A DNA stretch of 64,000 nt. It comes from Cyanophora paradoxa CCMP329 (taxonomy: Eukaryota > Plantae > Glaucophyta). The DNA is taken from NCBI GenBank assembly GCA_004431415.1, contig QPMI01000044.1:62001-126000 (forward strand), given 5' to 3'. Shown piece by piece: positions 1 through 63,265 of the stretch. The notes under the pieces were generated by a model. The model made no database searches. It was not told the origin of the DNA and saw only the letters and a program-made list of their open reading frames with translations. The position numbers were made by a program, and so were the translations under genes. Within the stretch, counting starts at the first letter, position 1; each line of letters opens with the position of its first letter.

Positions 1-3000
1 CGCGCCGCCTCCGGCTGCAGCGGCAGCTGCGCCCGCCCCGTCGACGTCCCAGAACGGCGCTCGCCTGCCTCCCATCGCTGCGGGCGGCGCGGGCGCCGGC
101 GCGGGCCCTTCCTCGGGCGCCCCGCGCCACCCATCCAGCGACCCCGGCGGCCTCCGCCCGCTCGCACTCCCCGGCAGAGCAGCTGCAGCCCGCGTAGGAC
201 CGGACCACGCCGCTCCCGAGAAACGTGCGCTCGCGCCGGCGCCGGCGTCGGCATCGCCCCCGCCGCGGGCGTTGGGTATCCGCCTAACTTCTCGCCGCGT
301 ACGGGCTCAGACTCAGACTCAGAGTCTGCCGCGGGGTCAAAGGATCCGCCGGGAGCCGCCGACCCGCCCAAGAAAGGGTGCGTGCGCCTGCGCGCAGCCG
401 GCCCTAGGCCTCCCGCCCGCCGCGGCGCGCCGGTCGCCGTCGCGCCTGCCTCTTGCGAGCCGTGCTCAGACCGAGCGCGCGCGCCCCGCAGGCCAGGGTC
501 GGATCCGCACCACGCGGCGCCCGCGCCCAAGTCGGGCTTCCGCGTCTGGCCCCTCACGGTCAGCTCGGACGCGGCGCCCCCCTCGGGCTCGCCGATGGGG
601 CTGGCCGCCGGAGCCGGGGACGCCGGCGGGGGCGCGTCCGCTTCGTTCGCGAGCGACGCCGAGCGCGATCGGGATCGCGAGGACGGGGGGGATGAAGACG
701 GGGACGGGGACAGCGGCCCGCCCCTCTCTGCCGAAGACGCCCGCGAGCCCGGCGGCCGGGCCGTCCGCCCGGGGCGCGAGGCCCCCGAAACCGATCGGGA
801 CATCGAGGTACCCCCCTTCCTTTCTCTACCCCCCACCCCTTCTTTTTTCTGACGCCGGCACGGGGGTATACGTACGCGCAGTCCGGCAATCTGAAGCTGA
901 AGCTCCCGAAAGCGGATTCGAGGGCGCACCCGGCCGCGGGGGCGAACGGGAAGGGTCCAAGCCGCGGCCGCCGGGACAAGCGGAAGCGGAAGCAGAAGCC
1001 GCGCAACCTCGCCACACGCTGGCGGGACCTCTCCGTAAGATTTTTTTAACTTATGCTGTTTGATTGATAACAATGCAGACAACTAAGGCTTGCAACGCCG
1101 CCCGCCTGCAGATGAAGAAGAAGCTAATGGCGCTCGTCGCCTCGACGCAGCTCCTCACGACCCTCGTCCTCACCGGGTACGACTTTTTCGCCTTTGATTC
1201 ACTGCTCCTGTCCTGCTCTGCTCTGCTCTCCTCTGACTACGAGCCCCGGGCCGGTGCCACGGTACAGCGTGGTGGTCCTGGTTCTCTTCCTGTCCTCCTC
1301 GGCGCAGCTCGTCCGCCAAGCTGGCTCCGAGATCCTCACGAACCAGGTCCATCTTTCTCTTTCTCTCTCCCTTTCTTAATCTAGATCTTAATTTACAGTC
1401 GCTCTCGCGATCTTGATATCGTTGGCATATGTTAACACCACGGCTGGCGTGCGGCCGGCGGCTCGCCAGATCGTGTACGACATCAAGAACAACCAGATGA
1501 ATTACGGCTTCGCGGGCCAAGGCGACAACCCCTCCATCATCAACGCCGCGCGGGTGCGCGCGCGCAGCGATATGCTTCAGAACGTTCGGCCCACTCGGCT
1601 CTAAACTAATTATAAACCTCGCTCAGCTATAGCTATAGCTAACTAAACGGCTACTAAATTAAACTAAACGTCCGGCCCACTCGGCTTCTAAGCCTTGCCT
1701 TAGCTAAGGCGATCACTCGCGATCGGCTACTAAGCCTCGCTCAGCTCGGGCCGACGGCGGCGGGCCCCGAGGCGGACGCGATCGTCCGAGCCGCGAAGGA
1801 GGCGCTCGTCAACGAGATCGTCCGCCGCGACATCGAGTGCGTTTTACTTAGCTTTCTTTGTATATAATCCTAAGCTCTCTTAAGCTAAAGCTTACTATCG
1901 CTAAGCCATCGAGTTCGCTTTCACTTCGTTTGTTTCTGTAGCTAACGAGCGGTGGGAAGGTACTCGAGCCTCCTGAGCGCCGACGCGGACCCGCTGGTCA
2001 TCGTCTCCTCCAACAGGCGCGCGCCCCGCCGCCCTCCCCCGCGCCCCTCCCGCTGCCTCGCTGAGCCGCCCGTTCCGCTCTCGCCGGCGCGCAGGGACCG
2101 GCGCGGGGAGCCGATGCCCGAGCTGCGCTCCTTCACGCGGGCCCTCATCGAGAGCAACAAGCCCGTGCGCCAAATCGCCCTCCGCCCCTCCTCCTTTCGC
2201 CTCACCGCGCGCCCCCCGCCGCCAGACGCGATTCAGCCTGCTCGTGTCGCGCAAGGAGCTCGTGGAGGGCGAGGGCGCCGTCCCGAAGGACCCATCGGCC
2301 GACTACTTCCTCGTCCGGTCCGCTGGGGCGGGAGCCCGAGATCTAGATTTCGCGAAACTTGAATCCCGTGAAATTTCGCAGGTTTATCGGGCGGCCGGTG
2401 TACACGGGCCCAGACCAGCCCCGCCCCGCCGCGATCCTTCTCGCCGGCGACGTGGCGCGTCCTCCGTTCTTCGAATTCAGTGTTCCTTTGGTTTCTTCGG
2501 CGCTGACGGCGCCGGCCCGCGCGCGTGCTTGGGGCGCAGGTCAACGGGAAGAACTGGACGGTCGAGCCGTCCCGCGCCGCCTTCAAGTCGGGCTACGTCG
2601 CCGGTGCCCGCGCGCCGCCTCGCGCTCGCCGCCCCCGCCGCGGCCTTCCCTCACCCCCCGGCGGCCGCCCGCACCGCAGTGTACCAGCGCTCGCGGCCGG
2701 ACTGCGCCTCGAGCGAGCCCGGCTGCTTCCGCGTCTCCACAGCCATGCTCCGTGCGCGGAATTCGAATTCCGCGCCGCTGCGGCCTTGTCGCTCGCCGAG
2801 TCTGACGGCTCGCGGGGCGCGCAGCGGAGGACACGGAGCCGCGGCTGGCGCCGCTGCTTGGGGCCGCCGCGGACGGCCTCCTCGAGGCAGCCTCGTCCGC
2901 CCAGCCGCCCGGCTCCGTCGTCACCAGCGTCCTCAGCCTGGTTCGCGATCGTTTGAACTGCTTAAATTTCGAATTACAATTAATATTGGCTGCGATTGCA

Positions 3001-6000
3001 TTATCGGTGACACTCTGGTTTTAATTTGCTTCGACCAGGCCGGAGGGGAGAAGGTGACGGCGGCGGCGAAGGCCCTTCAGGACCCCTCCGGGCGCTCCGT
3101 CGCGTTCCTGGTGCGCGCGGGGCTCCAAAGCTGCGGATCCTTGTGATTTCAACTACTTATTTTCCTTAACGAACTTGACCACACTGTTAAAGTGTCCAAC
3201 TAACCCACTCTGGATCTCGACTGACTGTTTCGCGTCCTCAGGTCCGTGCCACTTCCCACGCGCCGTCGGACGAGGTGCATGCGAACACTGCGTGCTTCGA
3301 ATGGAGACCGCGCGCGCGGTTTTAATTTCGCGGCCGACGCCGCCGGCGCAGGTGCTTCGTATTGGGGTGCTCGCCTGCGTCGCCTCGGGAGTGTTCGTCT
3401 GCGTCATCTCCTGCTGGCTCTCCTGGCTCCTCCTCGTCCACATCCTCAGCGCCCTCCGGGATCTCAAGGCGCGCGCGCGCGCGCGCGTCCTCATTGCATA
3501 TATATATATATCACCGCAACTACATTACATAATTTTTCTTATTCCATTGACAAGAAGAAATATTAATACAACTTAATCCATTCTTGACGTCGACTCCGTT
3601 TCAGTGTCTGACGTCTTAAGCTTTCTGCGCGCGTATGCACAGGTGGCGGTGGAGGACTTTGATTTCCTCAGCGACAGCACTTCGTGCTCCTCCTCGCGGC
3701 ACTCGATCTCCCTGCCCCCCGGCAAAGCGTGCGCCAGCCGCCCGGGACGGTTGGGGTTGAAATAGAACACCGAGTGCAAGCGAGGCACGCGTGCCAGTCT
3801 AGGGCACAGCCTAGCTTCAACTTAAGCCCCCTTAAGCTTAGGCTCTCTCTCCATGCCGCCCGCGGCCGGCAAAGCGTGCGCGGGCATCGACCGCGGATCG
3901 TGTAATTAGTGTAGCCCGCGATCGATTATTTTATTATATTAGCCCGGCGCGGCTTCGCATTCGGCTCACGCGATCGCGACTTCGGCGTTCAGATTCGACC
4001 TCAAGACGGCTGCGAAAGACGAGATTGGCCGCCTGACGACGGCCTTCAGCCGCATGACCCGCCGCGTCACCGACGTGCGGCGCTTTTCCGTTTCTTTCCG
4101 CTCTGCAGCTGGTCCCTCACAACGGGCGGACCGGACCGCAGTCGTACGTGCGGCTGGAGGAAGCGAAGGAGAAGGCGACGTTCGATGAGGCGCGCCAGAA
4201 GCTCATCTTCGACACCTGCAACGACGGTCCGCTTGTGCTTGGATCTGTCCGCGTCCCCACCGCTCGTTCCGAGTCTGGGGCGTCGCAGCGGTCTTCGTGA
4301 CGGACAGCGCGTGCACCGTGCTGAGCATGAACCCGCGGGCCGCCGCCATGTTCTTGTACGACCCCAGCGAGGTCCGCCCCCTAGGCTTCCGCCTCTGCTT
4401 TGCCTTCCCGATCCGTCTCTGATCTGCTCGCCCTTCAGGTCGTGGGGCGCAACGTGAAGATTCTTCTGCCACCGCAGATTGCCGCTATCCACGATGCAGC
4501 AGTCGCGAGGTCGCTCACATACTTAATATTAGCTGGTTTTAGAACGCCCATCGCGGAATCGCTTTGTGCTCACCTCGTCCAACCGCGAACGGCAGGCATG
4601 TTGCTGCCGGTCTCACTTTGGACAAAGACAGCATCTTCCGGTGCGCATGCACTGCTTTAACACTGGTCATATTTCGTGCAATGATATCGTCGGGGGGTTT
4701 GACTTGTACGTCTACTTGCTTTTCTTAAACAGGGATTCCTACGGGAAGCGAAAGAACGGCGACATCTTTCCCGTCCAGATCGGCCTCAGGCGAGCTCGGC
4801 CCTTTGATGGCTCTCCTTCGCTTCGGGACCGAGCTGATGCGCCGGCGGCAGCGAGATGAAGATCGGCGACGAGCACCTCTTCGTCGGCATGATCCGAGGT
4901 ACCCGCGCCGGCTCGCATATGCAAATGCACCCGGAAAGCGCGGTTGCTCCGTGCGGCACGAGCGGCGCTGACCATGACGTGCGTGTGCGTCGCAGACATC
5001 ACGGAAAGGAAGGAGATGGAGCTTCAGATCGCCCGGGAGCGTATGCGGTGCGTACGCGTCCGTTCGCACTCCCTCCTCGGGCTGCGCTGCTCAAAGTCGG
5101 GCGTTGCAGGACCGAGAAGCTGTTGAAGAACCTGCTTCCGGCAACGGTGCCGGCGCCCGCCACACCTTGCTCCATCGATATCTCCTTCTTTTCCGCCATC
5201 TACAACTCTAGATCTTCGCTCTGACGCGCGCGCGCGGGCACGTGTGCTCAGATCGCCGATCGGCTCAAGGACATGCAGGAGCGCGAGGCGAAGCACGCGG
5301 CCCGCGAGCTCTCGCACGCCCGGAACCGCGCCGTTCTGCGAAGCGCGGTGCACGACCGACGCCCCGGCCCCTTCCTAAAACCAGTGCACGAGTCTCACCG
5401 AGCTTGGATGACCGAGCTTCTACCAAATTCTCCGTCTCTAGATGATACTCCGTCTCTGCCCGCATAACGAATTTCGGAAATGCAGTCGATGATGCACGCG
5501 GCCCTGCCGGCGCCGGCGCCGCCCTCGGACGAGGACGAGAGGGAAGACGAGTTCGGGGCGAGCACGGAGCTCGTCAAGGGCGCCCTCGCCGACCGCGTCG
5601 ACAACGTGTACGCCCCTCAGCTTTTACCTCTGCCTCTTTAACGCTTAGCTCTGTGTCTTCTTCTAACTCGGGGCGCGGCCTGCGCTGCGTTCGCAGACCC
5701 GTCCTCTTCGCCGACATCGTGCGCCGTCGATCCCGACCGGAGGGCGCCGTCCCGAGCCGCGGCCGGCGCCGACCGACTGCGCGCAGGTCAACTTCACGCC
5801 CCTCGCCTCCTCCATGGACCCCGCCCGCCTCGTCTCCCTCCTCAACGGTGCGTCCGTTCGATTTAATTTCCACAGAAGCTGCAAGAGCATTATCTTTTTT
5901 TAATTAAACTCTTGATGCGATGCAGACATCTTTTCGGACTTCGATTCGCTCGCGGAGAGGTTCGGCCTGGAGAAGATCAAAACGATCGGTGCGCACGGCC

Positions 6001-9000
6001 CTTTTCGTAGCTATAGGGGTGTGTATCGTCTGTATCCGGCCCTTACTCGCCGGCAGGGGATGCCTTCATGTGCGCTGGCGGGGTTCCTCCCGACGTCGAC
6101 GCGCCCGAGAATGGCAGGTGCGATCTCATATGCTGAACTAGTACTCGCCGAACTGGCGCCGGGCCTTCTCTTCGAATTCGATGGTGCATTAATATTCTCG
6201 TTTCCCGCGCCGTCAGACCGTCGGCGGCGGCGGCGGCGGCGGGAGACAAGTCGACGATGGTCGGCGCACCGGCAAAGAGATCGGCGTTCGAGTCCGGGTC
6301 CTTCATGGGCGCCGAGGTCGGCGCCAAGATTCGGTCCTTCGGGTTCGATTCTCTGGTTTTTTATCGCGCTTCGGCTACATATGGATAGGATCCGGAATAA
6401 TTCGGGCTTGTATCTCCATTTATTTGACGCCTCACCGCATCTTGCCTCGCAGGGCGTCCCCCCGGGACGCTCAGATGGCAGCGATTCGAGCCGAGTCACC
6501 CGTGGTGCGTTGCATTTTCGTGTGTCGGTGTCGCCTTGCTAACGCTTCGCCGCGTGCGCATGCAGGTCCGCATGGCGGTGCGAAGAAGCCTTCTCGCGCG
6601 CTTGGATTAATTTTTCTAAGCGTGTAGTTCTGAATCTTCCGCGGATGCGCAGCGGCTCGCGCTGGCGATGCACGAGGCGATTTCGCGGTACAAGAGCTTC
6701 GACGGGCGCTCGTTCCGCATCCGCATCGGCATCCACTGCGGCACCGTCATCGCCGGGTGCGGCCCTCCTGTCTTTCTTCTGCCGGGTCAGCCAGGCTCGA
6801 TCTCAACAAGTTTTGATCTTCTCGCGCTCAGGGTGATCGGCAAGAAAAAGCTTCTGTACGACCTGGTGCGGCGGTCGCTTGTGTTGGCTTTGTCCTCTCA
6901 GTCTGCAAACTTGCCTCTTCGCTCGCTCAAAATTGCAATTCTCATTGGCGCACCCTTTTCGCAGTGGGGAGATACCGGTGCGCAGCGCAAAATTTCACAC
7001 CCGAGCATGCGTTGCTGATGCGTGCGCTGACAAACGTTCTCGAACCGCAGTCAACGTCGCGAGTCGCATGGAGTCCTCCGGCGTTCCCGGCCGCACCCAG
7101 GTGCCCCCGAGCCCCCGCCCTTGCGCCTAGCTCTCGCGCCGCCGGCTCACGCGCGCCCCGGCCCGTGCTCAGGTGACGGAGGAGACGTACTACCACCTCC
7201 GCTCCAAGTTCGCCCTGGAGGAGCGCGGCCGCGTCCACATGTGCGCCATTCTTTCTAAGCTTGAACGAATGTATAAGTGGATAGATACCTGTTCAGTCAA
7301 TACAATTGCAAGTAGCTATAGCTCACTGTGAGTGCGCAGCAAGGGCAAGGGCGAGATGAGAACGTACTTCCTGCTGCACCTCAAGCCGGCCGAGCACACA
7401 GCGGGACTGCAGCTGGCAGCGGCGGGCGCAGCCGCGCCCGGGCTCAGGTCGCTCTCTCCGGCCCCGGCCACTTCGCGGACGCACCGCCTGCCGTCCCTCC
7501 AGGCGCGCAAATTTGTTTGGCAGAGTTTGCTCTGCCCGAGTTGTTTGGCAGAGTCTGCTCTGCCCTGCCTTCCGCGTGCGCTCACAATTTCGACTGCGAT
7601 TCTGCAGACCGACACGCGGCTTCTCTCGCCGGACTTCTCGGCCCTCTCGTGGCCCAAGTCCCACCTGGGCGACGTGATGCTCGGCATGATCCGCAACATT
7701 GGGGTGCGATTAAAATAAATGCGCAGCAGCAAATGGCGGGTCCGGATCAAGCTCCAAAGCAAGGCGCTATACTGTTAACGATAACGCGAGGTTTTTTAAT
7801 GCTCGGTTGACCTGGTTTTCGCCGCAGCTCATCGACTCTCTCCACGTGAACGAGCGCGAGCTCGCCTCGTTCATCGAAGTCGCTCTCTCCACCTACCGCG
7901 ACAAAAACCCCTTCCACGTGCGTTAAATTTGCTTTGCACGTGATTATGATGAAACCTTTGGCCTTCAGCGCTAGCTCATTTCATGTCTGCACGGATGCAC
8001 GGATAATATTAACGTTAACGTTTGCGTCGCAGAACGTGCACCACGCCATCGACGTCGCCCAGTGCATGTTCATCTTCCTCCTCGGCCTCAAGCAGTGCGT
8101 TCCTCTAGCTCCTCGTCCCATCTTGAAGTTGGCTGACCGCGGTGTCTGCGTGACTGCACCAGGCGGACGCAGCCAGCCGCGATCGCGGCCGAAGCCGCCT
8201 TGGATCCAGACGTCGACGCCGGCGGAGACGGAGCGGCGGCTGCTCCGGTCGCGTTCGGGGGCGAGCCGGCGGTCCCCTCGAATTCGTGCGCACGAACCGT
8301 CTATGGCATTTCGCAGAGCTGCGAAGCTGTCGGCTTCTCACTCGCGCGCGCGCCTCGCGCAGCGTTGTGTTCGACGACGTGGAGACGTTCGCCCTCCTCG
8401 TCGCCGGCCTCTGCCACGGTGCCCCCGCGCGTCGCGGCGATCCGTGTCTGCCTTCATTGACCGGCCACGGCGTGTGCAGACCTCGACCACCCGGGCGTGA
8501 CGAACGCTTTCCTCGCAAAGAGCCACGCACCGATGGCCATCCTCTACAGCAACAGCAGGTCTGCGCCCCATCTGGCGCTGGCCCAGTTCTGGTCGGTTCT
8601 CACCAGTGTATCCGTCGTGGCTAGCCCCCTGGAGCGGCACCACGCAGCCACGCTCCTTGGCCTCCTACAGAGGAAAGACCTTGGCATCCTCGCTAACATG
8701 TCGCGGGCCGACCAGGAACGCTTCTCCCAGGTGCGAGCGACGCCCAGCCAGTGACGCTCATGATCAGCGCTGTTTCCGCGCCAACCGGCTGATCGCTTGC
8801 GGCAGCTCGCGGTGGATGCGGTGCTGGCGACGGACATGGTCCTCCACAACGACTTCCTCGTCCGTCCCGCGCCCCGCCCCGTCAAACGGTTTCACTGCTT
8901 TAATTTTGGCGCTGTTCTCGCGCGCGTGTGTGGTCAGGTCTCTCTCGCGAGGCGGTTCCCCGCCTGCAAGGGCGTTCCGGGCTTTCCCGCGGCCGCCCCC

Positions 9001-9700
9001 GGGTCGAGCCCGTGCTCCCGTTTCTCCCACTACAGCGAAAAGGTCGCGTGAACCAGCCCGAATCCAGCGGCCTCCGCCGCGGCGCTGACGGCAGCATCGC
9101 GTCTCGATCGGCGCTGCAGGCCTTGCTGGGGGGCCTTCTGCTGAAGTGCGCGGACCTCGCCAACGGTGCCCGCACGTTCGAGCACTCGAAGCTCTCCGCT
9201 GTCCTCGTTCAGCAGGCGCGCCCCGTCAAAAAGAATTAAATTTCATTTCGTTTCTCTTGTCGTGTGTTTCCTTATCGGCGTTCTAATTTCGATCGCATTT
9301 CGAATTCAGGAATTCTTCGATCAGGCGACTCTTGAGACGGAAATGTCGCTGGAACCGACGCCCGGCTTCGCCCCGACAGGTCCGATATCGATCTCGGACA
9401 GTCCAATTCGTTTTTCATGTCGGATGACCGCAAAGTAAACCGCTCAGATGAGCCGGACCTGGGCAACGCGTCGCGGCAGGTTGGCTTCCTGACGGCTGTC
9501 GTCCAGCCGCTCTACGAAACCCTCGCCGCCGTCGCCCCCGAGGTGAGGCGAAGCCCTCAAATAAATTAAAGCGACGACGCTTCGGTCTGTGGCGTCGACG
9601 CTTACTCTTCCGCCAGCTGCCCGTCGCCCGGGCTATGGCGGCTAACGTTCGGAGCAACGCGGAGCAGTGGCGCGCGTTGCGCGCGCAGCACCACATCTAG
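1..9700 (+). CDS. Multi-exon membrane receptor adenylyl cyclase-phosphodiesterase fusion, copy 1 (5' end upstream of window): TM1-extracellular sensor-TM2-HAMP-PAS-class III AC-class I PDE
   Basis: Hand-spliced exons give TM1 (MKKKLMALVASTQLLTTLVLTGVVVLVLFL, ~1112-1300), TM2 (VLRIGVLACVASGVFVCVISCWLSWLLLV, ~3352-3440), HAMP (KDEIGRLTTAFSRMTRR, ~4015-4070), PAS (AVFVTDSACTVLSMNPRAAAMFLYDPSEVVGRNVKILLP...GKRKNGDIFPVQIGLSEMKIGDEHLFVGMIRDITERK), cyclase ([74 protein letters not shown]; ~5590-7380) and PDE (PFHNVHHAIDV, LCHDLDHPG, LERHH, LATDM, CADLAN, EFFDQ, QVGF; ~7610-9680). Stop TAG 9698-9700. Confidence 0.92.
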
Positions 9701-14455: not shown

Positions 14456-17400
14456 TTACGCTTGCTGCATCGTCATGCTGCTGCCACCATGCACGCTGTG
14501 CTGCGCGCGCAATAGACCCCACTGCTCCGCGTTGCTCCGAACGTTAGCCGCCATAGCCCGGGCGACGGGCAGCTGGCGGAAGAGTAAGCGTCGACGCCAC
14601 AGACCGAAGCGTCGTCGCTTTAATTTATTTGAGGGCTTCGCCTCACCTCGGGGGCGACGGCGGCGAGGGTTTCGTAGAGCGGCTGGACGACAGCCGTCAG
14701 GAAGCCAACCTGCCGCGACGCGTTGCCGCGGTCGGGTTCATCTGAGCGGTTTACATTGCGGTCAGCCAATATGCGAAACGGTTTGCGAAACGCGAACGCG
14801 CGCAATAAGCAACTGAACATGTGACCCGTGCGCAATACGCTTAAACAACAATTTGCAAGGCGGAAACGCACTTGTCGGGGAGAACCCGGGCGTGGGTTCC
14901 AGCGCCATCTCCGCCTCCAACGTTGATTGCTCGAAAAATTCCTGCGGCGAAATGTTCGAGAGGGTACGGCGACGATGATGACGACGATGGATATTCGTAT
15001 ATGCACCTGCTGAATCTGGGTGGCGGAAATCTTCGAGTGCTCGAACGTGCGGGCGCCGTTGGCGAGGTCCGCGCACTTCAGCAGAAGTCCCCCCAGCAAG
15101 GCCTGCATCGCCGATCGAGACGCGATGCTGCCGTCAGCGCCGCGGCGGAGGCCACTGGAATCGGGCTGGTTCACGCGACCTTTTCGCTGTAGTGGGAGAA
15201 CCGGGAGCACGGGCTCGACCCGGGGGCGGCCGCGGGGATGCCCGAAACGCCCTTGCAGGCGGGGAACCGCCTCGCGAGAGAGACCTGACCACACACGCGC
15301 GCGAGAACAGCGCCAAAATTAAAGCAGTGAAACCGTTTGACGGGGCGGGGCGCGGGACGGACGAGGAAGTCGTTGTGGAGGACCATGTCCGTCGCCAGCA
15401 CCGCATCCACCGCAAGCTGCCGCAAGCAATCAGCCGGCGCTGGTTGTCGCCAGCTGCAGCAGAGCGTCGCTCGCACCTGGGAGAAGCGCTCCTGGTCGGC
15501 CCGCGACATGTTGGCGAGGATGTGTACGTCCTTTCTTTGCAAGAGACTGAGCAACGTTGCCGCGTGGTGCCGCTCCAGCGGGCTGACGGCCGCAGATACG
15601 TTGTTGAAATTTGGCGGAAGCGAAACAGTCAGGAGGAGCCTCGGAGGGCGGACCTGCTGTTGCTGTAGAGGATGGCCATCGGCGCGTGGCTCTTCGCGAG
15701 GAAAGCGTTCGTCACGCCCGGGTGGTCCAGGTCTGCACACGCCGCGGCCGTTCAATGAAGGCAGACGCGGATCGACGCGCCGCGCGGGGGCACCGTGGCA
15801 GAGGCCGGCGACGAGGAGGGCGAACGTCTCCACGTCGTCGAACGCAACGCTGCGCGAGGCGCGCGCGTGAGTGAGAGGCGCTATGCAGCTCCGCAAAATG
15901 CCATAGACGGTTCGTGCGCACGAATTCGAGGGGACCGCCGGCTCGCCCCCGAACGCGACCGGAGCAGCAGCCGCTCCGCCTCCGCCGGCGTCGACGTCCG
16001 GATCCAAGGCGGCTTCGGCCGCGATCGCGGCTGGCTGCGTCCGCCTGGTGCAGTCACGCAGACACCGCGGTCAGCCAACTTCAAGATGGGACGAGGATCT
16101 AGAGGAACGCACTGCTTGAGGCCGAGGAGGAAGATGAACATGCACTGGGCGACGTCGATGGCGTGGTGCACGTTCTGTGTGCAGTACCGGCAAGGTCGCC
16201 AGAGGACAATGCCACAAACGCGAGCTCGTGAAGAACACGCACATGGAAAGAATTCTTGTCACGGTAGGTAGACAGGGCGACGTTGACGAATGCAACGAAA
16301 TCCCCTTCGTCGATGCGAAGCGCGTCGATAAGCTGCCGCACGTTACAGAAGTTACGGCGATGATTTCAAAGCTGTAAGATCTAAATCACGACGAACCCCG
16401 AGTAGTCGCGTCATTCCGAGCATAACAGCCGCGAGGTCGGTTTTGGGCCATGCAAGCGACGAAAACTCCGGCGAAATGATCCTCGGATCAAACTGCACGG
16501 CGGTTGTCGCCTACGTTAGCTGTTAAGCTATATATAGCTATCTACAATTTTGATTTACGTTCACGTGAAAATAGCGAAATACGAGCTGGAGCTTGAGGGA
16601 GGGCGCGGCCGTACCCGCAGCTGTGCGGCGAGCTTGCGAAGCGAAGCCTGTCCTTGTGGACGGTGCGACTCGTGATCCGAGCGCGTCGTTATCAACTGGC
16701 CCAGTCCGTGGCTGTGTTCGGGATCGCTCGGTTTTGCGCCTTGCAAGAAGTAGGTCCTCATCTCGCCTATGCCCTTCCTGCGTGCCCGATTAATATTGTA
16801 AAGAAGCATGCATTAGCAGATCTATAGCTAGAACATGGTTTCAGATCCAAAGAAAGCGAACGTACACGTGGATGCGGCCGCGCTCCTCCAGGGCGAACTT
16901 GGAGCGGAGGTGGTAGTATGTTTCCTCCGTCACCTAAGCACGGGCCGGGGCGCGCGTGAGCCGGCGGCGCGAGAGCCAGGGGCGAGGACGACGGGTCGTG
17001 GCACCTGGGTGCGGCCGGGAACGCCGGAAGACTCCATGCGACTCGCGACGTTGACTGCGGTTCGAGGACGTTTTTCAGTACATGCACCAGCAATGCATAT
17101 AATGCATGCTCGGGTTTGAGGTTTTGCGCTGCGCACCGGTATCTCCCCACTGCAAAAAGGGCGCGCCAATGAGAATTGCGATTTTGAGGAGGCAAGTTTG
17201 CAGAGGACAAAGCCAAAACAAGCGAACGCCGCACCAGGTCGTACAGAAGCTTTTTCTTGCCGATCACCCTGATCGCGAGATTAACAGCTGATGTTGACAC
17301 TGGCTAACCCAGCAGAAGAAGCGAAGGCTTAGGAGGGCCGCACCCGGCGATGACGGTGCCGCAGTGGATGCCGATGCGGATGCGGAACGAGCGCCCGTCG

Positions 17401-20400
17401 AAGCTCTTGTACCGCGAGATCGCCTCGTGCATCGCCAGCGCCAGCCTCTGCGCAGCCGCGGAAGCTTAAGATTCAGAACTACTCGCTTAGAAAACTTAAT
17501 GCAAGCGCGCGAGCGAGAAGGCTTCTTCGCACCGCCATGCGGACCTGCAAGATTGAAAGCGTCAAATTAAAACGGCACAACTCGAGAACAATCATTGAAT
17601 AGGGAATCCAAACATCGAGCGCGGACGCACGCACCACTGGCGGCTCGGCTCTCACGGCGGCTAGCTGTGCCTCCGCCGCGCTGTGTTACGGTGTTAGAGT
17701 GCATATCGGTCGAGCAAAAGCAAGCTGCCGCACATGAAGGAGCTCATTTTGGCGCCGTTGATAGAGCGGAGCGAGTTGGTGAAAGTTTCCGACCTCCGTT
17801 GAGTCGTCATCGAGTCTCGCCGTACTTCGCCAGCCCCCGACGACATACTGCAGTGAGCGCTTGAGCAAAACCGCGCGCAGACTCGACTCAAACATTAATT
17901 TGAAACGCTGTGCTGCACCCGTCTAGATCGGCAGCATCGACATCGGGAGGAACCCCGCCAGCGCACATGAAGGCGTCACCTGCCCGGCGAGTAAGAGACG
18001 GATACATAAGATACACGCCCCTACGAAAAGGGCCGTGCGCGCCGATCGTTTTGATCTTCTCCAGGCCGAACTTCTCCGCGAGTGAATCAAAGTCGTAGAA
18101 GATGTCTGCATCGCATCAAAAGTTTAATTACAAAAAGATAATGCTCTTGCAGCTTCTGTGGAAATTAAATCGAACGAAAGCACCGTTGAGGAGAGACACG
18201 AGGCGGGCGGGGTCCATAGAGGAGGCGAGGGGCGTGAAGTTGACCTGCGCGCAGTCGGTCGGCACCGGCCGCGGCCCGGGACGGCGCCCTCCGGTCGGGA
18301 TCGACGGCTTACGATGTCGGCGAAGAGGACGGGTCTGCGAACGCAGTGCAGGCCGCGCCTCGAGTTAGAAGAAGACACGCTCGCGCGGCGCGCGCGCGGC
18401 GCGGGAAGAGGCAGAGTTAAAAGCTGAAGGGCGTACACGTTGTCGACGCGGTCGGCGAGGGCGCCCTTGATTAGATCCGCGTTGGTCCCGAAGAGGTCGT
18501 CCTTCTCCGCGTCCTCCGGCGGCAGAGTCGGCTCGCTCGCCTGCGTGATTGACTGCATTTCCGAAATTCGAATTCGTTATGCGGGCAGAGTATATATATA
18601 TATATATTTATATGTGTTTGGTACGTAAAACGTTGCCGTGCACCATGCGACGTGTGCTGGCGCCGGTGCGCCGACGCGCTTTGAAAGAACGCGCGCGCGC
18701 AGCCTGCTGAGCTTCCTGCATGTCCTTGAGGCGGTCGGCGATCTGCGCGCGCTTGCATCAGAGCAGAATCTCCAGGAAAGAGACGGCGACGGCAACGACA
18801 CGCACCGTTGGCGGAAGCAAGTTCTTCAACAGCTTCTCCGTCCTGGAACCGTTGAACGTTAACGCGCGCGGGCGGCATCATTATAAAGTTACATTAAAAT
18901 ATGAGCAATGTAATACAAGTGCAACGGATGGAGGCGATTGCGGATGGAGGCGATTGCGGATGGAGGCGATTGCGGATGGAGGCGATTGCGGATGGAGGCG
19001 ATTGCGGTTGCGATTGGGCGAGCGCACCGCGTGCGCTCCCGTGTGATCTGCTTCTCCATCTCCTTCCTTTCCGTTATGTCTGGCCATGGAACCCGCGATC
19101 ACGCCACCGGGCCGGGGCCGGCGGGATCTAGGCCGGCGGGCGGAATTCGAAACCTCGGATCATGCCGACGAAGAGGTGCTCGTCGCCGATCTTCATCTCG
19201 CTGCCGCCGGCGCGTCAGCTCGGTCCCAAATCGAAGGAGAGCTACCAAAGGGCCGATCGCGAGCTCGCCTGAGGCCGATCTGGATGGGGAAGAGTTCGCC
19301 ATTCTTTCGCTTCCCGTAGGTGTCCCTGAAACACGAACGGACGAACGTTAACAAACCAACCCCAATCGATATCAATGCGCATGCACGAAATACAATCGAA
19401 AGCATTGCGTGCGCACCGGAAGAGTTGGTGGTTACTCAAAGTGAGACCGGCTGCCACATGCCTGTACGTATACACATCGTTTCGAATGAGTCCGAGACAG
19501 ATAGCTATAGACTTGCAAATTTAAGCGAAATTGAAGCGTGTATACGCGACTAGTAGGATCCGCACAACACACCTTGCAACTACGTCGTCGTGGATAGCGG
19601 CAATGTTCGGCGGCTGCAAAATCTTTACATTGTGCCCCACGACCTAAAGGGAGACCAATTGCAACGTAGAGCGGATCGGAAAGGCGAAGGCAAAGTAGAG
19701 GCGGAAGAGGAGGCCTAGGGGGCGGACCTCGCTCGGGTCGTACAAGAACATGGCGGCGGCCCGCGGGTTCATGCTCAGCACGTTGCACGCGCTGTCCGTC
19801 ACGAAGACCGCTGCGATCGCGACGACCCGGGCTCGGAACGAGCCGTGGGGACGTCGACGCGGGCAGATCCAAGCACAAGCGGACCGTCGTTGCAGGTGTC
19901 GAAGATGAGCTTCTGGCGCGCCTCCTCGAACGTCGCTCGCTCCTTCGCTTCCTCCAGCCGCATGTAAGACTGCGGTCCGCACGAATCAGGGAAAAGGGTA
20001 CATATATACGCAGCGGAATGCAGCGGGATCAACCGCACGTCGGTGACGCGGCGGGTCATGCGGCTGAAGGCCGTCGTCAGGCGGCCGATCTCGTCAGATG
20101 CGGCCGTCGTCAACGTGAATCTGAAAACGTCAACGTCGCATGAGCCGCGCCGATCGCAAGCGATGAGCGTGCAGGCACGCGCGCGCGTGCGCACGCTTTG
20201 CCGGGCGGAAGTGTGAACGAGTGCGTGGAGGAAGAAGAACTGTTGTCATGGTGGAAGTCGAATTCCTCCACCGCTTCCTGCACACGGAGAAAGGCGTCAG
20301 ACACATAAATGAAACGTATTATCAAGTTCTTCTTGTTCTGTTCTCCCATTCGTGCTCAAAGCTCGCCTTCAGGTGGCGTAGGGCGCGGAGAACGTGCACA

Positions 20401-23400
20401 ATGAGGAGCCAGGAGAGCCAGCAGGAGACGGCGCAGGTGACCACGCCCGAGGCGACGCCGGCAACGACCCCGGTCCGCAGCACCTGCGGGGCAGGCAGGC
20501 AGACGGGCGCCCGATTAGAGTTGGGTCGATCATGATCAGAGAACAAACGAAATTCAAAGCGCCGCACCCCGTCAGAATCAACGTGCGAGGTGGCGCGGAC
20601 CTAAGCGTACGCGCGCGCAGAGTTAGCTCGAGAACTGTGCGGAACTGGACAGCTGACTATAATGTATTAAGAGCGCACCAGGAATGCGATGGAGCGCCCA
20701 GTGGGATCCTGCAGCGCTTTCACCGCGACAGTCACCTCCTCCCGGCCGTGGTGGCCAGCCTGCGATCGCGACTTGATAAGAAATTGCAATTTCTGCCGAA
20801 TGTAGATTCTAGATGTAATCGACCGAAAGCAGTCACCAGGATGAGGACGTTGGTGACGACGGAGCCGGGCGGCTGCGCGGACGAGGCGGCGTCGAGGAGG
20901 CTGTCCGCGGCGGCCCCGAGCAGCGGCGCGAGCCGCGGCTCCGTGTCCTCCGCTGCGCGCCCCGCGCGCCGTCAGACTCGGCGAGCGACAAGGCCGCAGC
21001 CGCGCGGAATTCGAATTCCGCGCACGGAGCATGGCTGTGGAGACGCGGAAGCAGCCGGGCTCGCTCGAGGCGCAGTCCGGCCGCGAGCGCTGGTACACTG
21101 CGGTGCGGCCGGCCGCCGGCGGGTGAGGGGCGCCCGCGGCGGGGGCGGCGAGGGCGAGGTGGCGCGCGGGCACCGGCGACGTAGCCCGACTTGAACGCGG
21201 CGCGGGACGGCTCGACCGTCCAGTTCTTCCCGTTGACCTGCGCCGCAAGCAAGGCGCGCGCACGCGCCGTCAGTGGCCGCGCCGAAGAAATCAAAGGAAC
21301 ACTGAATTCGAAGAACGGAGGACGCGCCACGTCGCCGGCGAGAAGGATCGCGGCGGGGCGGGACTGGTCCGGGCCGGTGTAGACGGGGTGCCCAACGAAA
21401 CTGATTTAATTGCTTCAGCCGAATTCGAAGGGCGAAATCTCAGGAAATCTCGGGCCCCAGCGTACCGGACGAGGAAGTAGTCGGCGGTGGGGTCCTTCGG
21501 GACGGCGCCCTCGCCCTCCACGAGCTCCTTGCGCGACACGAGCAGGCTGAAGCGCGTCTGGTGGCGGGAGCGGTGAGGCGAAAGGAGGAGGAGGGGCGGC
21601 AGGCGGCGGGGGCGCACGGGCTTGTTGCTCTCAATGAGGGCCCGCGTGAAGGAGCGCAGCTCGGGCATCGGCTCCCCGCGCCGGTCCCTGCGCTCCGGCG
21701 AGGGCGGGCACAGCTTAGGACCCGGGAGGGCGGAGGGGCACGCGGGAAGGAGGCGGGCGGCGGGGCGCGCGCCTGTTGGAGGAGACGATGACCAGCGGGT
21801 CCGCGTCGGCGCTCAGCAGGCTCGAGTACCTTCCCACCGCTCGTTAGCTGCCGAAGACTACAGAAGCAAATCAAGTAAAGGAGCTCGAGGTAATTATAAA
21901 CTATATGCAAAGAGAGCTAAGTAAACTGGGCGAATTAGAGCGCACTCGATGTCGCGTCGCACGATCTCGTTGACGAGCGCCGCCTTTGCGGACCTCAGAA
22001 TGGCCTCCGCCTCGGGGCCCGTCGCCGTCGGCCCGAGCTGAGCGAGGCTTAGAAGCCGAGTGGGCCGAATGCGCTGCGACCTGGGTCGCGGACCCTTGCC
22101 GCGCTAATGATGGAGGGGTTGTCCCCTTGGCCGGCGAAGCCGTAGCTCATCTGGTTATTCTTGATGTCGTACACGATCTGGCACGCCACCCGTGTTGTCA
22201 GGCTGAATTATAGCAAGCCAAATTACAGAAAGCAAAAGCAATTACCTGGTTGGTGAGGATTTCGGAGACGGCTTGGCGGTTGAGCTGCGAATGCATCGAC
22301 AGGAAGAGAACCAGGACCACCACGCTGTATACGTATCGTGGGACCGGGGTCAGACCCGATTAATATTGCGACAGCGAGTAGCGCGGGTCGGGCTGTGAAG
22401 AGCCGAACACGCGTACGCGAACCCAATTAGGACGAGGGTCGTGAGGAGCTGCGTCGAGGCGACGAGCGCCATTAGCTTCTTCTTCATCTGCGGGCGGGCG
22501 GCGATGCAAGCATAAGTCCCGATCGTCTACATTATTATCAACAGAAGAGCGTAAGCGATGCAAGTATACGTAGGCGATGTAAGCATAAGTCGTCTGCATT
22601 ATTATCAACAGAACAGCGTAGATTAGAGCTTACGGAGAGGTCCCGCCAGCGAGCGGCGAGGCTCCGCGAGGGGGCCTTCCGCTTCCCTTCGTCCTGGATC
22701 CGGGCCCGCCGGGCGTGGCCGGGGGTGTGCGCGTTCGAGTTCGTCCTGTCGGTCCGCTGCGGCCGATCCTTCCCGGAATGCTGCGCACGCGTCCACGTTA
22801 GCGTCGACGAGTCGAATCCATATTAAACGTTTGATGGGATATCAATCGATATCGATCAGCAAAAGCGTGCACGCGCCTCGGCGTCGTCATCGTACGCGTG
22901 CTCCGGGTCGACATCAATATTTTCGCTGGCGAGCGAGCCGCGGCGGCCGCCGGCGCGCTCCGTCAGCGGGCTGCAGGCTGAGGTGGGCGCCGTGGAGCCC
23001 AGCAGGTGGACGAGGGGGGGAGGAGCGCTAGCCCCGGGCGCGCGCGACGCGGGGGTCGAAGGCGACGCCGACTCCGCCCACTTCGAGCTGCGCGGATCCG
23101 GAAGAACTCAGCTAGAGCTGCAGCCCCCTGCGGCCGCCGGGCCACAACTGGCAAGCGCAGCGTGCGCACCCCGCGTCCGTCTTGTACGGGATGGGATCGT
23201 GACAGGGATCGTTCTCGCCCGCGGCTTCTGCGCATGCAGGGCCCGGGGCTTTAGGGATATCTAGCTATAGAGGGTCAAAGCAAAGCCTTGGCAAAGCCAG
23301 CTTGGCAAGCTTAAGCTGTTAGCTATGGGCGGTGGAGCGAGCGCACGGATTTGCGACTCCTTTTGAGAGCCGTGGGGTTCGGGAGAGACGCGGGGAGGCT

Positions 23401-60350: not shown

Positions 60351-63265
60351 ATGGAGGAGCGCAGCGGGGCGACGCCCGCAGGTCCGTGAAGTGTTTTGAA
60401 ATATGAAGCCGATTGGGAGAGAAATTCGCGAGGCCTCTGATCATGAAGTGATTATAAACGCGCACGCAGACGTGCCCGAGCGGCTCATGGAGTGCGCGAA
60501 GACGAGCGGGCGCGTACGCACGGTGTTGCGAGAAAGTGAGGAAACATCTTCCGCGGCGTTGTCCTCGAGCTCGGACGTCGACGGCAGCAGCATTCGCAAG
60601 CGCATGCGCAGCACGTCGCTGGTGCTGAGCGCCAGTGTGCATCCGGAAGAGGACACTAGTAGTTATACTGCGTCGGCGGAAGATTCGAATTCCGAAGCAT
60701 ATGCATCAGCTGCAGCCGAAGGTGTCGATCCCGAATTTGAATTCGAAGCGGCGGCGGCACCGATCGCGATCGCGATATCCATCGAGCAGCTTCCGGACGT
60801 GATTCTCTCGAAAATTCTCGAGTGTCTGGGCCTGAAGGCGTCGGCCGCGACGCGTTTCGTATGCCGCCGCTGGCGCGACGCGGCCGATGCGGTCTTCTGG
60901 CACCAGCTCGACCTCAAGCTGTACGCGGAGAGCGCGGACGAGCTCGCGGGCCTCTTGATCGGCGCTCAAGACCTGGACTGGAGCCAGCTGGACGACGCTG
61001 CGCGAGCGGAAATTATCTGGCAGCGTGCGGGCCGCGGGCACCGGATTCGAGTCGCCGCGGGCGCTTCCCTGCGCCTGGAGGTCACCCCCGTCGATATTGA
61101 GGACATCGAAGTCGATGGCCTCGAAGTATGGCAATCCACCCTCTCCCTCCTCGCGGCGTGCGCGGCCGCGGCCGGCGCGGCGAGTGGCACCAGCACTGGC
61201 CATGGCGGCCTGGGCGCGGTCGACGTGGACTGCTCGTGCTCCCCGGACTCCAGCTGCATCGCAGACATGCTCAACGCCGTCGTGCCGCCGAGCGCCCCCG
61301 TCTGCCGCTCGCTCCGCAACCTCTCCCTGCGGGCTGTCTACTCTAGATTTAAATCTGAAGATTCTTTCTCACTTGGAGTCGGCCCCAACTTCCGGCGCTT
61401 GATCTTCCCGAACCTCGAGAGCCTCCTCGCGATCGGCAACGAGCCCTGCTTTTACGCCTGCCGCGCCGACGCGGAGGCCCTCGCCCGGTGCCTGCCAAAC
61501 CTTAAACGGGTGTGCAGCCGCTGAGCCGCTCCCTTCTCGCGATCGCGATCGCGATTCCATGTTGACATATCATGATCATGTACCATGTTGACGTGCAATT
61601 GGATCCGCAGCTGGATGTGCGGTTCGATCACGAAGATCTAGAGCTGGGGGCCACCGGCAAGCTCGAGGGGTTCATCAGTGAAGCCGCAGCAGTGTTCCCA
61701 GCTCTCGAGTACTTCAAAACAACATTGTACTCCGCGGCGGCCGAGGATATGTATGTCAGAGAAGACGCCGCGCCCTTGCTCGAGGGCCTCGCCTCCGGCC
61801 CCGCCGCCCTCTCCCTCAAGGAGTGCGTACCCGTCCAGGATTCTTGCCGTCCAGCACAATTTTGAGCTGAGCCGCGTGCTCATGCATATGATCAGGATTG
61901 TGCTGGATTGGAGGAATGCAATTGCCGTGCAGTGGGAGCTCTCTCCGCTGGCCCTGCGCGCTCTCGAACGCTTCCCCGCCCTTCAGCGCCTCCGTGGAAT
62001 TCCGTCTGTCTCGGTCCGTGCCACCCCTCGCCCCGCCCATCCCAACCCTTCTCCGCCGCTCGACTCTGCCTGCCCTGATCGAAGGCCTCTGATGACCTTG
62101 CAATTGCATTATTCGCGAAGGTGCCCTCTGAGACTGCCGAAGATGACCTGGCCGTGCTGGGGTCCCTTCCGGCGCTCACAAGCGTGGGGCCACTTGAGAT
62201 CCGCACGCGTGACAAAGATCCAGAGAGCCTCGTCGCCCGCTTGAACGGCCTCGCCGCCGTCCTCGAGCGCTCTTCCTCGTTGACCGATCTCCGGCTCGAA
62301 ATTTGTGCATCCGGATCCCCAATTAATTTCCTGCTAGCGCTTGTCCCGCTCTGACGGGGGTCCCTGCAATTTTCCTTGTTGTCAAGAGCTCACGACGCAA
62401 CAGACTCTCTGCCTCTGGAGGCGTCCCCGGCGCTCGCTCGGCTCATCACGACTGGTGCCCTTCGACGGCGGCTCGCCATAGATCTTCGAATTCATGCAAG
62501 GGAACCGCGGCCGGAGGTCGAGGAGGCCCTGGCTGCGCTGGGCTCCTGCCCGGGACTCACGAGCTTGGGGAGGCTAAGTTCTTGCGGTGAGGCTGTTCCA
62601 ACGGTCTTGAACGGCCTCGCGGCGGCCTTCGAGCGCTCCTCCTCGCTTACCGACCTCGAGCTATTCATCGAGCTCTGTGCGGCCCTTTTTTCCCCTCTTA
62701 GCTCACATGTACATGCCTCGTTAGAGCTAACGAGGCATGTACATGTGCAACAGACGATTTGCTACCGGAGGCACTGGCGGCGCTCGCGCGGCTGGCCAGC
62801 GCGGCCCGCGGGCGCTTTTCCCTCGCGGTCCGGCTCGTGGTGGGGCGATTGCAAGACCGCGCGCGGGCCAAATTCATTTGAGGGGGTAGCCGCGGCGCTG
62901 GCGGCCTCCCCGCCCCGCAGCCTTGCCCTCGGCCTCTGCGTATACGGAGACGAAGCAGACGTCGTGATCAGCCGCCTGAAGGGCCTCGCCGCCTTCGCCT
63001 TCGCCGGCTGTTTGAATTCCACGGGGGACATCGAGGTCTGCGAGCTCTGCAGCTGGCCTCTGGGCGGGGCCGCCTTGATTAGCTTCCTGGCGGCTTGCAA
63101 TTAATATTGCGGTTATATATAATTATTAATTGAAGACGCCCGCAGGTACGCTTGAAGAGTACCGCGGCCGAGAGCGCGCGCGTGCGGTGCGCCGCACGTG
63201 AATCTGCGGCCAAAGCCCTCCCCACTGCCCGTATCCTGATGCGCGACGACGATGATGAATGGTAG
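60351..63265 (+). CDS. F-box protein with C-terminal LRR-like repeats
   Basis: F-box SIEQLPDVILSKILECLGLKASAATRFVCRRWRDAA (~60780-60885); LRR-like units (SLRNLSL, FPNLESL, LPNLKR, FPALEYF, FPALQRL, SSLTDLRL); start ATG GAG GAG...G|gt; last exon ends DDDDEW*. Confidence 0.85.

Follow-up and report, generated by a model that had tools for sequence, protein, structure and literature searches.

Bacteria use double Cache domains more than any other kind of extracellular sensor, but eukaryotic receptors rarely have them. The cyanobacterial taxis receptors that join HAMP and GAF domains to the signalling domain of a methyl-accepting chemotaxis protein (MCP) (MCP/PilJ; PixJ/TaxD-like) place their sensor between two transmembrane helices, followed by HAMP, and end in a GAF and MCP signalling output. 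Streptophytes with motile sperm possess CAPE, whose single polypeptide combines an adenylyl cyclase of class III with a phosphodiesterase (PDE) of class I; its PDE is reported to be N-terminal and its cyclase C-terminal (PMC5159850, PMC8115329). The 64,000-nucleotide stretch of Cyanophora paradoxa CCMP329 analysed here (hereafter the window; positions 62,001 to 126,000 of contig QPMI01000044.1, assembly GCA_004431415.1) contains a nuclear receptor gene that can be set beside both. Its sensor, too, lies between two transmembrane helices (TM1 and TM2) ahead of HAMP, but where the cyanobacterial receptors have a GAF and MCP output the window has PAS, cyclase and PDE; and the last two, which lie on one strand as a pair, come in an order reversed with respect to that reported for CAPE, cyclase then PDE, behind an extracellular sensor, HAMP and PAS. 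We consider it likely that the gene encodes a TM1-double Cache-TM2-HAMP input module descended from a cyanobacterial type-IV-pilus taxis receptor and joined to a PAS domain, a class III cyclase and a class I PDE. Full-text literature searches found no published description of this receptor or of the algal-cyanobacterial link, which is weak evidence of novelty.

The sole match to the stop-free frame 1977-3143 of the window (a query that includes three exons) among 1.84 billion representative proteins is P0001, a public gene model of 689 amino acids whose residues 288-689 are identical to the spliced reading of the window. P0001 and its parts served as queries for the spliced sensor, exons being otherwise searched singly. 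A word-indexed search of 5.8 billion proteins, restricted like the other searches of that collection to certain length ranges, gives one eukaryotic relative of the P0001 sensor (37% identity, E 2e-40, 99% coverage of the sensor): P0002, the Cyanophora paradoxa protein tig00020710_g13248.t1 (EukProt EP00741), which has the order sensor-TM-HAMP-PAS. With the sensor of P0002 as query, six proteins are found (E 1e-15 to 3e-23). They are 917-1006 residues long and carry HAMP and GAF domains and an MCP signalling domain; those that a source names are methyl-accepting chemotaxis proteins of the cyanobacterium Mastigocoleus or bear the label PilJ. The window sensor itself matches two of these MCPs by BLASTP at 6e-26 and 1e-29, with 32% identity over approximately 280-297 columns, nearly the whole domain; and a profile of the two eukaryotic sensors aligns over 275 columns with a profile of four cyanobacterial sensors (hhalign) at 99.9% probability and E 4e-35. 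Across 43 aligned sensors, both eukaryotes included (all but two of the 43 are cyanobacterial or of cyanobacterial type), twelve columns are invariant, and the family consensus equals, motif for motif, the motifs that the initial annotation of this DNA had given for cyanobacterial methyl-accepting taxis proteins. Judged by sequence, the window sensor and the periplasmic domain of the HAMP-GAF-MCP taxis receptors of cyanobacteria are homologues, much as that annotation had proposed.

A scan of bacterial genomes, one per species, yields 319 loci of this family. The best 80 of the 319 come from many cyanobacterial orders, with two exceptions: one is from another bacterium and the other from a contig of 5.6 kb assigned to a Tatlockia bin. 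The bacterial copies are uninterrupted, with open frames of approximately 880-1350 residues where these are complete; in Calothrix PCC 7716, the MCP gene adjoins a gene for a CheA-like hybrid kinase. When the window's own sensor is compared to metagenomes by tblastn, a further 62 uninterrupted loci appear (E down to 5e-31), and these are 41-70% identical to a cyanobacterial member versus 29-35%, over full-length matches, to the algal proteins. The Tatlockia contig (JACCVJ010000479.1, locus L015, from a metagenome-assembled genome in a Legionellaceae bin) carries a sensor that hardly differs from the one in Chlorogloea sp. CCALA 695 (L014; tree distance 0.02); to judge from this resemblance, its presence in the bin most probably reflects misbinning of cyanobacterial DNA and not a transfer.

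The predicted structure of the ectodomain agrees with a Cache-like fold, as first suggested from the letters of the window. An AlphaFold model built from the 43 aligned sensors (predicted local distance difference test score 92.1; predicted template-modelling score 0.89) shows two alpha/beta modules behind a long N-terminal helix. Its best matches in the PDB by Foldseek are tandem-PDC ligand-binding domains (probability 1.0), and re-alignment gives Z scores of 14-16.5 over 200-239 residues spread along the entire model to DctB, Tlp3, KinD, TlpA, PscC and LuxQ, with DctB and Tlp3 reaching as high as 16.5. These proteins and Pfam family dCache_3 (PF14827) place a tandem PDC behind a long N-terminal helix, as the window sensor does, although the solved tandem-PDC structures have only 7-17% sequence identity to it. 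Among the clusters of the ESM Atlas, the top four (template-modelling scores of 0.83-0.84) are cyanobacterial MCPs and histidine kinases; clusters of other phyla (Cache_3-Cache_2, sCache_3_3 and dCache_3) score 0.69-0.74. Thirty of the 43 aligned sensors match dCache_3, the best at E 1.2e-9; the window sensor gives no match to that model at E values up to 10. As modelled, the sensor is a divergent double Cache (tandem PDC) domain belonging to a subfamily that is found mainly in cyanobacteria and for which Pfam has no separate model. The sensor fold also heads an ESM Atlas cluster of cyanobacterial histidine kinases of the order HAMP-HisKA-HATPase_c (template-modelling score 0.84), so the family is not confined to MCPs. 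Ten sensor exons searched singly against Pfam, each 21-39 residues long, gave no match at E values up to 10; a single exon compared with PDB sequences matched solely designed helical repeats, which were set aside.

Since double Cache domains with this fold are common to the sensors of many phyla, the window sensor might instead be a divergent member of the universal superfamily with no specific affinity to cyanobacteria, its cyanobacterial matches reflecting the bias of databases. The nearest neighbours of the sensor in protein-language-model space, which are Cache clusters of Campylobacterota and Bacillota, would fit such an explanation, as would the bias that the scan patterns give to the genome scan. 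We regard it as very improbable nonetheless: every sequence-level match that can be named is cyanobacterial, the 62 metagenome loci have their high identities to a cyanobacterial member, the four best clusters by shape are cyanobacterial with other phyla scoring lower, and the 12 invariant columns extend to both eukaryotes.

The gene structure on which the spliced sensor depends was worked out from the reading frame, the splice sites, RNA-like contigs and an inverted second copy of the gene, as follows.
1017-1034, plus strand: end of an upstream exon, either coding or 5' untranslated region (GT at 1035; P0001 residues 282-287).
1112-1176 and 1268-1346, plus strand: exons with a possible start ATG (1112), a short lysine-rich cytoplasmic stub and TM1 (frame and splice sites).
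1470-1553, 1745-1836, 1960-2016, 2095-2164, 2226-2317 and 2382-2454, plus strand: first six of the eleven sensor exons (frame, gapless alignment to the paralog, homology and fold).
2540-2603, 2680-2751, 2825-2940, 3039-3110 and 3242-3274, plus strand: remaining sensor exons of the eleven in 1470-3274 (the same evidence and RNA-like contigs).
3352-3468, plus strand: exon of TM2 and the entry to HAMP, with a GC donor at its end (splice sites, paralog and RNA joints on both sides).
3643-3728 and 3993-4074, plus strand: two HAMP exons, with a serine-rich insert in the connector (RNA joints and Pfam HAMP).
14498-22487, minus strand: inverted paralog of the entire receptor, tail to tail with the first copy (collinear blastn blocks, shared exon/intron positions and tblastn of the Cyanophora protein P0002).

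The window has a base composition of approximately 65% GC, with short, AT-richer introns, and long stretches are open in all three frames; chance open frames are so common here that an open frame by itself is no proof of coding. The 15 exons from 1112 to 3728, placed by hand and checked by script, nevertheless form a single reading frame throughout. AG precedes all 15, and GT follows each except at 2017, 2455 and 3469, where the donor is GC. The encoded order is TM1, approximately 290 non-hydrophobic residues that form the ectodomain, TM2 and the start of HAMP, the hydrophobic windows lying at P0001 residues 301-319 (TM1) and 611-629 (TM2). Thirteen introns interrupt the coding region from TM1 to TM2, which bears out the proposal that the module acquired many introns, every bacterial copy being uninterrupted.

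RNA-like contigs from three runs join 3110 to 3242, 3274 to 3352, 3468 to 3643, 3728 to 3993 and 4074 to 4142, and one such contig contains the exon 2226-2316. The contigs of the three probable-RNA runs are confined to exons, and those of a DNA-like run span introns as well. In the paralog, the counterpart of the 15 exons extends from 22487 down to 20193; all 15 align gaplessly, every intron but two contains insertions or deletions, most introns are only 47-62% identical, and the splice dinucleotides are retained. The N-terminal part of the paralog has 331 of 391 amino acids identical, including 20 of 21 for exon 1112-1176 and 22 of 27 for exon 1268-1346. Between the two copies, synonymous changes exceed replacement changes per site, and the ratio of the two rates over the sensor (dN/dS) is 0.22. 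Bacterial contamination, or an artefact of gene prediction in GC-rich DNA where long chance frames are open in all three phases, would have to accommodate spliceosomal introns at conserved positions in two paralogs, constraint on the protein sequence, spliced contigs and bacterial copies that are free of introns; we give such explanations practically no credence. The spliced peptides quoted in the initial annotation are present in the order and at the place it gave, as seen in the reading frame, the paralog, the RNA-like contigs and P0001. Together these observations establish the gene structure of the sensor region, including its transcription and splicing.

Several features of this region merit separate mention. 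The three GC donors (3 of the 14 introns of this part) are all retained in the paralog. Within the sensor, three consecutive introns in 2455-2824 are 88-97% identical to their counterparts in 21327-20953, with 98-100% identity in the intervening exons; from its sequence, this looks like a recent gene-conversion tract. The N-terminal 287 residues of P0001 are of low complexity, have no RNA support and are not conserved in the paralog. That gene model fuses the piece 1017-1034 in frame to the ATG exon; none of the RNA-like contigs supports the piece, and by blastn no conservation in the paralog is seen upstream of 971. At its other end, P0001 ignores the donor at 3729 and continues into intron sequence until it stops, which affects residues 669-689, so that HAMP, PAS, cyclase and PDE are missing from it.

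Downstream of the sensor, the plus strand carries the signatures of the output domains.
3943-4185 (frame), plus strand: HAMP (Pfam HAMP, 17.5 bits, below cut-off).
4142-5152, plus strand: exons of PAS and a coiled-coil linker, in an approximate model (weak Pfam PAS_8, below cut-off; splice model).
5540-7430, plus strand: catalytic exons of a class III nucleotide cyclase (Pfam Guanylate_cyc, 28.1 bits, above cut-off).
7828-9700, plus strand: exons of a class I cyclic-nucleotide PDE, with the stop codon at 9698-9700 (Pfam PDEase_I, splice model and paralog).

The PAS region of P0002 matches the window at 4139-4519 by tblastn. RNA-like contigs in the cyclase stretch cover 5251-5346, 5485-5607, 5925-5987, 6214-6341 and 6652-6755. 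The PDEase_I match scores 57.2 bits (cut-off 24.8) and is accompanied by two weaker pieces in profile order; the PDE region is 90-95% identical in nucleotides to the paralog. An open splice path leads from 3643 to the stop at 9700 through the exons of HAMP, PAS, coiled coil, cyclase and PDE in order. In the search that found this path, scoring followed the codon usage of the sensor exons, and only splice sites that the paralog shares were allowed; a search that does not score codons is uninformative, all frames being open in GC-rich DNA. In the translations along this path, the residues at the positions that set specificity for ATP or GTP in class III cyclases appear to be lysine and aspartate, so the enzyme would presumably be an adenylyl cyclase. 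Part of the cyclase region, 6108-6561, has no blastn match to the corresponding part of the paralog, 17928-17549, though RNA-like contigs give exons there at 6214-6341 and approximately 6452-6506; this part may be a divergent insert or contain alternative exons. The proposal that a sensing module had been rewired from chemotaxis to cyclic AMP (cAMP) signalling holds as far as the succession of HAMP, PAS, cyclase and PDE signatures on the plus strand is concerned.

Certain results weigh against the receptor as we describe it. No single contig or gene model was found that joins the sensor to the cyclase and PDE, and the splice model disagrees with the RNA-like contigs near 5150-5540 and 6100-6650 and is unreliable there; in the other stretches that allow a comparison, it performs well. 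Residues 320-612 of P0001 have no direct match in Pfam (to E 10), NCBIfam or PDB sequences, so the membership of the window sensor in the Cache superfamily is transitive and structural. The patterns of the genome scan were specific to the cyanobacterial family, and other phyla were therefore not fairly searched by sequence.

A maximum-likelihood tree of 86 sensors unites the window protein with P0002 in a clade (100/99). The algal pair has a long stem and branches outside all of the 84 cyanobacterial rows; it is thus a sister group, not nested within the cyanobacterial diversity sampled. The cyanobacterial part of the tree mostly tracks taxonomy, the Nostocales, for example, forming one group. 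The wide and taxonomy-tracking presence of the sensor in cyanobacteria, versus two sequences in eukaryotes, indicates that the direction of transfer was from a cyanobacterium to a eukaryote, and a cyanobacterial source of the sensor is well supported by these comparisons. Accompanying the sensor, P0002 shares with the window protein the order TM-sensor-TM-HAMP-PAS; its model ends at residue 599, inside PAS and before any position at which a cyclase or PDE could stand. The simplest reading of the two sequences is that a single old acquisition was followed by fusion to PAS before the algal carriers, or the donors of their genes, parted. Apart from an acidic insert of 44 residues in the connector, the TM2-HAMP portion of P0002 matches its cyanobacterial counterparts at E 2e-7, which weakly suggests that the entire TM-sensor-TM-HAMP unit moved together; the evidence is weak because HAMP domains generally resemble one another. 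Both eukaryotic proteins have a stretch of low complexity inserted into the connector of HAMP, which is acidic for P0002 (approximately residues 440-485) and serine-rich for the window protein (3680-3728); the insert does not occur in the cyanobacterial receptors, which also differ from the nuclear gene of the window in having none of its 13 introns.

The route by which the sensor arrived is harder to read from this tree, which has no outgroup and an unresolved backbone, in which both eukaryotic rows are long-branched and of unusual composition, and for which the 80 retained loci include no deep-branching cyanobacterial lineage such as Gloeomargarita. With no closer donor at hand either, these properties leave room for both an endosymbiotic and a later route. 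The initial annotation favoured the plastid endosymbiont as the source of the module: its cyanobacterial source stands, on the homology at 32% identity, but the endosymbiont as donor does not follow from a long stem outside the sampled cyanobacteria. By the endosymbiotic route, the module would have come from the cyanobacterial ancestor of the primary plastid, been fused to HAMP-PAS early in the Archaeplastida and survived in the glaucophyte Cyanophora. The single eukaryotic clade with its common sensor-TM-HAMP-PAS order, the low identity of the two sensors to each other (37%), which is consistent with great age, the attachment of the pair to no crown cyanobacterial order, and the metagenomes, which gave no closer bacterial relative, all accord with this route. 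Set against it are the weaknesses of the tree, the early-branching cyanobacteria missing from it, and the carriers themselves, only two among the 5.8 billion proteins in the length ranges searched, with no red or green algal carrier among the matches; a further search of proteins of 161-513 residues with the aligned pair of eukaryotic sensors found none. An endosymbiotic route appears to us possible rather than probable.

The very patchy distribution in eukaryotes is what would be expected of a later lateral transfer from a free-living or associated cyanobacterium, after which the fused receptor passed between eukaryotes or, alternatively, was gained once in the lineage of a later gene donor. 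No cyanobacterial sequence exceeds approximately 35% identity to either eukaryotic copy, however, so any such transfer would be old, and the 13 introns gathered in the region coding for TM1 to TM2 likewise speak against a later date. The chance of a later transfer seems to fall somewhat short of even.

Past the domain order, the account is inferred: that a ligand binds, that its signal is passed on, that the enzymes are active and that one transcript carries all domains. By likeness to bacterial Cache-HAMP receptors and to HAMP-linked class III cyclases, a small extracellular ligand would bind to the Cache domain of the dimeric receptor; the resulting conformational change would travel via TM2 and HAMP to PAS and the coiled-coil linker and would alter the activity of the cyclase dimer, and possibly that of the PDE as well. 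The attached PDE would limit the cAMP signal in time or space, such that the receptor would give a self-limiting signal. The conserved residues of the sensor family point to a shared ligand. That the sensor-TM-HAMP unit is a relic of a taxis receptor of the plastid ancestor, kept for detecting the same extracellular ligand as the MCPs of cyanobacterial phototaxis, we nevertheless think rather unlikely.

The window presents a nuclear algal gene, rich in introns, in which a bacterial input module appears to be connected to a second-messenger output of eukaryotic kind, and it helps to define a sensor family, as yet without its own Pfam model, that comprises cyanobacterial MCPs, cyanobacterial histidine kinases and two algal proteins. 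If the endosymbiotic route were true, the receptor would represent a signalling gene of the plastid ancestor that has been kept in very few lineages. If the ligand is indeed shared, the cAMP output of the algal receptor, being easy to measure, would offer a means of identifying the ligand of the cyanobacterial receptors.

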